NCBI GenBank assembly: GCA_963924565.1
Contig: OZ004607.1
Coordinates: forward strand, 22,878,001 to 22,942,000
Direction: 5' to 3'
From: Ascidiella aspersa
Taxonomy: Eukaryota
DNA length: 64,000 nucleotides
The notes under the pieces were generated by a model. The model did no database searches. It had not been told where the DNA came from and saw nothing but the letters and a program-made list of their open reading frames with translations. Each line of letters opens with the position of its first letter. Positions within the stretch are counted from its first letter, which is position 1. A program made the translations under genes and the position numbers. Positions 9,736 to 12,700 of the stretch are shown one piece after another.

Positions 9736-12700
9736 TTAGTAGGGGGCAAATCGGTATCCTCTGGTGAGGGCAGTCTGAAAAAATAATAATGTTTTGAAAG
9801 CACTGCAAGTCATAATGTCACACTTCACAGTTATAACACACCAACTAGTTTGGTCAACAAGAAGTTAACATCTCGAAAGTAATCTATAGACTTAGAGTTG
9901 TTGCTACCACCGCAAGCGCATCATTTTTCACACTGCAACATACACTTTAAATATCTAGCACGTCAAACGCATCAGGCCCATCAAGCGCCGCTGTCATGCC
10001 ACTATAGATGTACACAATGATTGCATGAGGAAATTAAACGGGCCAACGGTTTATCAATTACTGTCACACAAGTATAAGCGATGGACATGCAAACACTCAC
10101 GAAGTAAAAAGCGAAACATAGTTACAGAAATAACTTTTCCGTTGGGCATTATGAAAAACAATTGTTTAAATAAACACTGCACGCTTTTCAACGTTACGCA
10201 AGTAAAACAGTACAATGGGAAGGGTTAAAAAGTAGTTTTAAAATCCAGAACTGACCAACAAGTTTAAAAATGTGACACTGGCCATCGGTTAGACAGTACT
10301 GAAATGATGTGGCTAAAAGGGCACAAGTCTTCAAGTTATAAAAGGGCATAAAAACACGCATATATACACCGAAAAGCGACAGATATCGATGGGCTGTTCT
10401 TTTGCCGATTGTTGTGGCATGCTGGCATGCAAAAGTGGCAGGAGCGGGAACACAAATCGGGAATCCCATAAATAGTATCTCCAAGCATACGAAAGCCGTT
10501 AATTTAAAAAAAATCAGGCTGTTGTTTCGTTCTAAAGGGTAAATATGGAGTCATTTTAATTGGTCTAATGCGGATTTGAGAGAACGCGAGTAAAAAGAAG
10601 AATATGTTTGCTGTAACTGTTAACAGACAAGTATTTGTAGTAATCAATTAGACATAATAAATCCATTCCAACGAAATAAATGTTGTACCTTCAGGGATTT
10701 TTTTATTTTATCCAAAAAACAATGTCGGGATTTGCAATATTTCATTTTCGATGTTTTCCAGTTTACATGTGGAACTCTATTCCCTAACTCTTCTATGTTA
10801 GTCCAGGCAACACAAACACTTAAGTTAAGTACGGGGAAACAAATAGGCGCAATCAAGCATCAACCAGCGTTGAAATTGCAGATTGCATAAATTTAAACGT
10901 CATGCGGAGATTACAAAAATGCATCAGATGGCTTCAGAATACAATTGTTAGAGTAGGTAATTAGATAATACTCGAGCCCATAAAGAAGTAGAAAGCAGTT
11001 TGGTCTGCTATTTTTTCTACATTAAAAAACGTTTTTTTAAATAGAATTTTGCAAGTTGAATATTGTGATGTTAATATCGTCCTATTTAACGGAAAATTTG
11101 TAGACGGAAAACGCTTATTATTAGCTGCCAATCCCATTTCCCGGACTACGTTTTTGGCAATAGGCGCTATTTTTCGTAGTCGAATTTCTTTTTACTTAAC
11201 ACGCACCTTCATTCACTGAGAAGTGCGTGTGAGGAGTTATCTACGCCTTTTGATCACTTGCATCATGCAAAGTCTGATTTTGCAACATCTGTCTACACTC
11301 AGGGGTATAATGGTGCCAAACGGATGAGATCAATACGCTCAAAACAAGTTCACATAGAGACGCTGGTTGCAATCTTGAATCACACTGATTCGAGCAGCCT
11401 GAATATGCCACTTCATATACCGGTTGTGCATGCCAGCATGCGTAGTCGTGAACTTACCCACGTTTTGTTTTTTGTGCACTAGACAACTGGCGCGAGGGCT
11501 ACGGCCGACTACAATTACATAAATGAATGGAGAAGTTAGTAAAATAGCTAAAAACACGACCGGTGTTTTTTTATAAATCAACTTAAATAACTTTATTGAA
11601 CATGGCCAAATCTATGGACTGTAGATTGCCAAAGACTTTTAAAAAAGCTACTGGAATTGATCAAATAAAAACACACCTGGTAACAGAGATGGGTTTATGT
11701 GTTTTGATATTGATCGTCAAGATTTTCACCAGATCAAAAATGATTTTATATACAAGTCGCCAAAAGTTTAAGTTAAAAGAAAGGATCGTTATATTTCCTA
11801 ATCTGTGGTTCTCAAACTGGCGTCCGCATTCGGGGTCTGATAAATTAAGTAGCTTGAGTACATAATTCGTTTGACAGCTCAAGATTTCTTCTTTAAAACA
11901 GGCCCGCTATTGTTTTAAAGAGGCAAGGGGTCTGCTAAATAATTGTAAGAACCACTGCGTTATTCAAATAATACAAACCGTTTATAGCTTTTTTTTAAAA
12001 AGGTATCTTGCTATACAATATAAAAAACAAACAAATAAAAATTGCTTTTCAGTTAGTAGTAAACGCAACTATTCGGTTAGTAGTAAACGCAACGCGTCAA
12101 AAACGACAAAATCCTCTCTCTCGGGCGTTTAAAATACAGTGAAAACTCGGTCGTCAATACAAGATGGTTACGTCATATCGCACACTGAAGCCATAGACTC
12201 ATGCCGCTTACCCCGTAAGTGCTGTTAGTAAGAGCAGCTTGCTGGTAGGGGTCGAGAAATTGCGTGCCAGCTGCATAAGTGATCTGTTGCGGGGCGGGAG
12301 CAGCCACGCCCGCCGCGGTGTAACTGATCCCAGCCTGGAGCTGTTGGGCTGCTTGTGAGGACTGCAAGACACGCGGCAGGGCGTAGGCCGTGGCTCCACC
12401 AGCTGCTAGGGCTCCGGCAGCCGCACCAGGCTGCGTGCATAAAACATGAATAGATTACATAAAATATGCATCGGCGCAGCGACAGCTTGTAGGCGTAATC
12501 CGACCGTTCTTACTTCATAGCGAGCCTTTCGTTCCTGTCTGTTAAAAACGCTCCGTTTCTTTTTGTGCGCCATTTTTATATTTTTTTAATGCAAGATTGC
12601 AAGCGTCTGGGGCTAGAATATGTTTGCGTAGTTTTGAAGGCCACACACAGTAGGCTTCCAAGCTGATATTTTGTTTTAGTTCAAACTTTTTTATTTATTT

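Follow-up and report, generated by a model that had tools for sequence, protein, structure and literature searches.

Splicing in neurons and muscle is governed by Rbfox proteins as master regulators, and the setting of their dose in the nucleus is understood only in part. The last intron of an Rbfox gene of the ascidian Ascidiella aspersa, on the minus strand of the 64,000-nt stretch analyzed here (GCA_963924565.1, contig OZ004607.1, positions 22,878,001 to 22,942,000; hereafter the window), shares features with several described systems: (i) in vertebrate Rbfox1 and Rbfox3, a penultimate cassette exon (exon 19 of Rbfox1) likewise removes the C-terminal PY import signal, giving nuclear -FAPY and cytoplasmic -TALVP forms (PMC3126832, PMC3246316); (ii) in the so-called RNA bridges of Rbfox (PMC8052449, recounting Lovci et al. 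2013), conserved long-range intronic pairing, which is predicted for the ascidian intron as well, joins the region beside an Rbfox-regulated cassette exon to a distal region with Rbfox sites; (iii) in conserved complementary intron regions, described under the names IRBIS (PMC4174434) and PCCR (PMC8052449), complementary k-mers are kept at both positions of orthologous introns, and some of the catalogued human pairs overlap an RBFOX2 site, as in GPR126 (PMC8052449); (iv) in the autoregulatory splicing of RNA-binding proteins, including the Rbfox2 networks (PMC3967051), the protein's own motif adjoins an alternative exon of its own pre-mRNA; and (v) in the terminal loops of pre-miRNAs that carry GCAUG, access of the RNA recognition motif (RRM) needs a single-stranded site (PMC4872098). 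At the ascidian locus, a segment with two GCAUG cores (arm A) lies just downstream of a cassette exon, and its exact complement, with two further cores (arm B), lies deeper in the same intron. As an explanation of the whole, we favor, at slightly better than even confidence, a duplex of Rbfox sites that competes with Rbfox itself on an exon whose inclusion removes the import-signal tail.

The two arms were found exactly as an earlier note on this DNA had read them, with GCAUGCUGGCAUGCA at 11441-11427 (minus strand) reverse-complementary to UGCAUGCCAGCAUGC at 10431-10417, about 1 kb apart (Table 1). The 15-mer occurs at just these two sites in the 308.6-Mb genome. Its underlying pattern, GCATGC-NN-GCATGC, was detected at 12 loci genome-wide, two of which are these arms 1 kb apart, versus 17 loci for a reversed-pattern control. 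GCAUG is about four-fold enriched in the last intron (9 in 2.4 kb versus 57 per 64 kb on the same strand). No known RNA family was identified in 9400-12600 by Rfam.

Orthologous loci were found by searching with the neighboring C-terminal coding exon, after which the encoding contigs were fetched; this yielded the genomic loci L011 to L015 and the mRNA L016, and two further profile searches for more species returned no new loci. Ciona savignyi P0004 and one pipefish protein came without a contig record, and DNA run X4, which is near-identical to the window and of low coverage that does not reach the arms, carries no comparative information. Arm A (C-GCAUGCUGGCAUGCA) was 100% identical over 16 nt in the six genomic loci and always began 16 nt past the G of the cassette GU; its two GCAUG cores occupy intron positions +17 to +29 and are likewise identical in the six species, which makes it a conserved downstream GCAUG element. 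The whole intron was available for the window and L013 to L015, and in these four species the arm B island, UUGCAUGCCAGCAUG, was invariant over 15 nt, and the sequence on either side of it resisted alignment, also between the three species nearer to one another. The next GCAUG outside arm B was at least 330 nt off in every one of these introns. The arms are 1010, 1726, 2964, and 4005 nt apart in the four species, and the last exon follows arm B about 640 nt later in the window but roughly 0.8, 2.9, and 5.0 kb later in L013 to L015. Exactly three blocks of at least 11 nt were common to all four introns (2.5 to 9.9 kb), namely the 5′ splice site block GGGUAAGUUCAC, arm A, and arm B; shuffled introns, used as a control for this k-mer footprint, gave no common block of that length. 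The arms were also the only source of non-trivial 8- or 9-mers shared by the four introns along with their reverse complement. In the 6.5 kb upstream, coding exons included, the species had no 10-mer in common. Identity in the adjacent coding exon is about 55% when the window is set against L013 to L015 and 76 to 79% within the latter three. Conservation in related introns, on which the earlier note had made its proposal depend, was thus found for both arms in four species and for arm A in six, and the pair built of four GCAUG sites that it had described is a conserved complementary pair of four GCAUG cores.

The gene model was read exon by exon. By its sequence the minus-strand gene is an Rbfox homologue, an assignment made earlier and upheld by a match of the RRM exon at 18525-18659 to Pfam RRM_1 (E = 2.9e-9) and by identities of 95% (21/22) with a Latimeria Fox-1-like protein over a 22-residue RRM stretch and of 82% with Ciona savignyi H2YWU4 over the RRM stretch GFGFITFE...EGRKIEV. 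The RRM is single, has Fox-type RNP sequences, and is encoded by minus-strand exons near 19105-18975, 18850-18790, 18650-18560, and 15734-15675. Orthologous open reading frames of the constitutive C-terminal exon (12442-12212) were identified in P0001, P0002, P0005, P0125, and P0126, as well as in the Ciona savignyi Rbfox protein P0004. The last intron spans 12211-9775 and is followed by an exon whose RFAPY ending reads as an R-x2-PY type of the C-terminal hydrophobic PY nuclear-import signal, which is defined as R-x2-5-PY (PMC3126832); the corresponding exons of L013 to L016 end in RFTPY-stop or RFSPY-stop. RNA reads on the untranslated region (UTR) of the last exon (run X5) had the orientation expected of minus-strand RNA. 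Next to the C-terminal exon, a GCAUG at 12204 stands 7 nt inside the intron of the window; the closest relative, L011, has a GCATG at 840 directly after the same exon, and none was present at that spot in L013 to L015.

Within the last intron, the exon at 11508-11458 is real and coding, as judged from a peptide conserved across species and from its presence in the spliced L016 mRNA. Seven species encode the conserved nine-residue tail and stop, comprising the six genomic loci and L016. At the same place in each of the six genomic loci, an exon encodes S-[AP]-[VI]-[AP]-[LIV]-[AST]-P-[VLM]-V-stop, with many nucleotide differences that are synonymous or conservative. The spliced mRNA of the seventh species (L016; protein P0006) includes the exon as SHIALSPAV-stop between the C-terminal exon and the RFSPY exon, which widens the pattern to S-x-[VI]-[AP]-[LIV]-[AST]-P-x-V and stop; as a pattern for finding the cassette elsewhere, this can be written S-x-I/V-x-x-x-P-x-V-stop followed by GGUAAGUU. 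Inclusion of the exon is predicted to place a stop before the RFAPY tail and to leave the tail untranslated. Since this stop is only 21 nt before the last exon junction, and the standard rule for nonsense-mediated decay (NMD) calls for 50 to 55 nt, NMD is not expected for the cassette isoform. The earlier proposal that this exon decides between nuclear and cytoplasmic Rbfox therefore stands in part: the cassette is real, conserved, and replaces the RFxPY tail, while the effect on localization would follow by analogy with the mammalian -FAPY isoforms (PMC3126832).

The bases between and beside the GCAUG cores bear on whether the arms pair with each other or only bind protein. The non-motif bases C6, U7, G8, C14, and A15 of arm A were invariant in six species and U1′, C7′, C8′, and A9′ of arm B in four, and all of them are Watson-Crick to their partner. 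Given two equally spaced double-GCAUG sites, we estimate the chance of such matching at about 1/256 to 1/1024. Because these spacer bases lie outside the Rbfox motif and are both invariant and complementary, their conservation suggests selection for pairing as its best reading. Positions 2 to 15 pair in all four species; the terminal pair varies (G-C, G-U, G-A, and G-U), L014 and L015 have an extra A-U pair at the opposite end, and each species keeps 15 to 16 pairs. The predicted duplex has an invariant core of 14 bp, or 15 to 16 bp with its ends, and an energy of about -27 to -29 kcal/mol. Taken singly, the arms can fold into hairpins of 5 bp (-5.7 and -5.0 kcal/mol), in line with the small hairpin previously suggested for each 15-mer. 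In the minimum free energy (MFE) fold of 10400-11460 (minus strand), the 15-bp helix is present with a pair probability of about 1, and adding arm B lowers the probability with which arm A is predicted to be unpaired from about 0.3 to about 0. The arm-to-arm helix was likewise in the MFE structure of segments of 1.1 to 4.1 kb from all four species. On balance, we consider it somewhat more likely than not that the arms pair functionally.

Several points weigh against this reading. Compensatory changes in related introns, named earlier as a check, were not found between the arms of the four species because the 14-nt core never varies. Pairing does not account for two conserved bases, a C immediately preceding arm A and an additional U preceding arm B, and the flanks do not lengthen the duplex beyond chance. 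Rbfox prefers a W-GCAUG-M context (RNAcompete motifs); the bases flanking the arm B cores largely fit it, and binding alone could account for part of the conservation. The species sampled fall into two deep lineages, the window with L011 and a Ciona-like group of L012 to L015, and arm B was compared in four loci, the contigs of L011 and L012 being too short for the comparison. In the RNA-seq run of this species (X5, about 6% of reads examined), no junction reads and 0 reads on the cassette were recovered, the run being shallow with an exon depth of 1 to 2. A bare repeat is also not rare, with five exact inverted repeats of at least 15 nt within 3 kb in the window. Compared with 60 dinucleotide shuffles, the MFE of the whole 10400-11460 segment gave a z of only -1.7, so that of the fold comparison proposed in the earlier note the 15-bp helix stood and a distinctive folding energy did not; among the shuffled sequences, unbroken long-range helices were as long as 17 bp. 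Thermodynamics by itself thus proves nothing for the helix. The repeat on its own is set apart only weakly, and what raises it above chance is the motifs it contains, the place where it sits, and its retention in other species. Finally, a helix that closes 1 to 4 kb would have to form against co-transcriptional splicing and bound proteins.

The missing covariation, the two flanking bases that pairing leaves unexplained, and the enrichment of GCAUG in the intron can also be accounted for if the arms are two independent Rbfox enhancers, one proximal and one deep-intronic, with no functional duplex; the complementarity would then be a by-product of the palindromic GCAUGC, perhaps dating from an ancient inverted duplication. 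Consistent with this, GCAUG forms each of the four cores, the preferred context is present in arm B as UGCAUGC and AGCAUGN, and regulation by Rbfox motifs clustered deep within introns is known (PMC12435732). What independent enhancers leave unexplained is the invariance of U7, G8, and A15 in six species and of C8′ in four, together with the exact complementarity, at the chance level estimated above, and flanks only a few nucleotides away vary freely. We regard this alternative as unlikely, though it survives better than any other.

Much less probable is a purely architectural helix, in which the GCAUG cores would be incidental. By looping out 1 to 4 kb, the pairing would make the intron effectively shorter from the 5′ splice site of the cassette to the last exon, much as helices in yeast span the stretch from 5′ splice site to branch point. 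The fixed 16-nt distance of arm A from the 5′ splice site in six species fits such a role, as does the prediction of the helix in every species despite very different loop sizes. However, arm B stands anywhere from about 640 nt to roughly 5.0 kb ahead of the last exon, and a helix of this kind should tolerate compensated changes, yet the arms are invariant and made of the binding motif of the gene's own protein. Marginally weaker still, and in our view improbable, is a 15-bp double-stranded DNA element, for example a transcription factor site, present twice in opposite orientation, or else a site for another RNA-binding protein. As duplex DNA both arms are the same sequence, and invariance of the whole site is typical of such motifs; on the other side, the exact 16-nt register that arm A keeps with the 5′ splice site in all six species speaks for a role at the RNA level, the sequence is made of the RNA motif of the encoded protein, and no candidate factor emerged. 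An origin of the pair by chance, or as the terminal repeats of a transposon (a miniature inverted-repeat transposable element), is effectively refuted, and was rejected despite the other inverted repeats in the window and a 180-nt low-copy repeat between the arms, in that the 15-mer has two genomic copies, the rest of the interval is single-copy, the arms bear no target-site duplication (their flanks, ...gactac and cacaac..., differ), and both arms are kept in four species at different spacings.

Under the preferred explanation, a duplex of Rbfox sites in competition with Rbfox, the parts could work together as follows. Rbfox on single-stranded arm A would promote inclusion of the cassette, following the established position rule by which Rbfox bound close behind an exon favors that exon. 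Output would thereby shift to a form lacking the import signal, so that the simplest circuit would be negative feedback on nuclear Rbfox, with the direction of the splicing effect taken from this position rule. The self-complementary GCAUGC would let Rbfox's own sites pair with one another, and since the duplex would bury all four GCAUG cores, protein and helix would compete. Once a single site is bound, the remaining ones would become accessible, and cooperativity or a threshold response could result. Arm A would be free just until arm B is transcribed, and this may add a timing element. In its strongest form, ascidian Rbfox would carry a structure-encoded, ultrasensitive autoregulatory switch that converts nuclear dose into an all-or-none choice between import-competent and import-deficient isoforms; we put this forward tentatively, as a possibility that we think will probably not hold in full.

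Table 1. Features of the last Rbfox intron and its exons (window coordinates).
Feature	Positions	Strand	Details
Constitutive C-terminal coding exon	12212..12442	-	Ends ...LTNSTYG in phase 0; donor GT at 12211-12210; from sequence and translation
Cassette exon, 51 nt	11458..11508	-	AG acceptor, GTAAGT donor; phase 0 SAVALAPVV-stop (TAG 11481-11479)
5′ splice site GUAAGU of cassette	11452..11457	-	Conserved block GGGUAAGUUCAC spans 11459-11448; columns invariant in alignment
Arm A, C-GCAUGCUGGCAUGCA, two GCAUG cores	11427..11442	-	Starts 16 nt past G of 5′ splice site
Low-copy repeat between arms	10737..10919	.	94% identical copy at G000:C2:6950343-6950522; outside the element
Arm B, U-UGCAUGCCAGCAUG-C, two GCAUG cores	10417..10432	-	W-GCAUG-M context; reverse complement of arm A
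Last exon, start	9736..9774	-	12 residues then stop, end ...RGYRFAPY-stop; 3′ UTR after

Three further helices, described earlier as properly nested inside the arm pair, were examined as helices 2 to 4: 11413-11406 with 10440-10433 (8 bp), 11402-11395 with 10521-10514 (8 bp), and 11369-11360 with 10870-10861 (10 bp). Their letters are exact, but the helices were absent from the orthologues, and the duplex energy obtained with the real flanks of the arms was no better than that with dinucleotide-shuffled flanks (z of -1.6 to +1.3); the three were rejected. A polymorphism at 10517, G>C on the plus strand, disrupts helix 3; it is carried by DNA run X2 and by 4/4 RNA reads from X5. The 3′ arm of helix 4 lies inside the low-copy repeat. 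An apparently compensated helix 2 in L014 was dropped, as cofolding prefers a local hairpin. The repeat itself shows 2- to 3-fold depth and contig breaks in the DNA runs, and its GCATG at 10905 is ACATG in the other copy. At 11566 of the window, DNA runs X1, X2, and X4 are one base short in an A-run, probably reflecting an assembly homopolymer error or a fixed indel.

Additional sequences of note were observed in and around the last intron. The 10-mer TCGTATGCTT is present in all four whole introns (window 10483-10492, L013 10748, L014 11986, and L015 11832), with about 0.06 expected by shuffling; it is inside a longer conserved block in L013 to L015, and in the window it is placed differently with respect to the arms. 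In L012 to L015, a second conserved block, CAAGTGGCGCGCT...AACTTGAACCGGTGTGAAAAC, able to form a local hairpin, follows arm A at about +10 to +70, and window 11413-11379 echoes it only partly (AAGTGGC and CAGTGTGA). Upstream Rbfox introns of the window have more GCAUG clusters, at 13782-14060 (e.g., four in 280 nt) and 17383-17387, in which no k-mer is in common with the other species. Other exact inverted repeats of the window, whose halves are closely spaced, at 36407-36431/36584-36608 (25 nt), 48952-48968/49567-49583 (17 nt), and 50317-50331/50759-50773 (15 nt), may be small transposons. A pattern scan of metagenomes gave a single hit, contig L018 (JAAUXV010325020.1), where positions 256-285 read GGTAAGTTCAC and then a pair of GCATG cores separated by 3 nt; it is without the cassette peptide and was taken as chance or as an unrelated Rbfox-type target. 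In the rbfox1l locus of Danionella (L017), no paired double-GCAUG arms were found, which is weak evidence as it concerns a single paralogue.

The locus offers a compact, testable case in which binding sites double as pairing partners on the exon that decides whether the import signal is retained. Invariant elements as tiny as these (15 to 16 nt), in small ascidian genes, could allow the effects of pairing and of binding to be told apart, and ascidian embryos are routinely electroporated. The k-mer footprint across highly diverged introns picks out pairs of this kind without alignment. If the proposed competition is true, it could represent a general design principle for RNA-binding proteins with palindromic motifs. 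The arrangement is not known to have been described before, our full-text literature searches finding no description of GCAUGC-based self-pairing Rbfox sites or of the ascidian element, nor any report of a complementary pair of motif clusters at the vertebrate exon.

Set beside the known systems, the ascidian locus differs from each in a specific way. The vertebrate Rbfox exon shifts the reading frame, whereas the 51-nt ascidian exon adds an in-frame stop after a conserved nine-residue peptide. Autoregulation by RNA-binding proteins usually ends in NMD or a dominant-negative form (PMC3967051), while the outcome predicted here is loss of the import signal combined with sites that sequester one another. 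The pre-miRNA case (PMC4872098) concerns local hairpins, and the ascidian case an intronic duplex of kilobase range. In the RNA bridges, as they are presented in PMC8052449, the distal GCAUG stands single-stranded beside the stem and is delivered to the exon. The arm B cores, in contrast to the distal site of such a classical bridge, lie entirely within the predicted stem; the four GCAUG of the ascidian arms would be the stem, and pairing would exclude binding. Compared with the IRBIS and PCCR regions, the ascidian arms are built almost entirely from the motif of the protein that the same gene encodes and are the only conserved islands of their intron.

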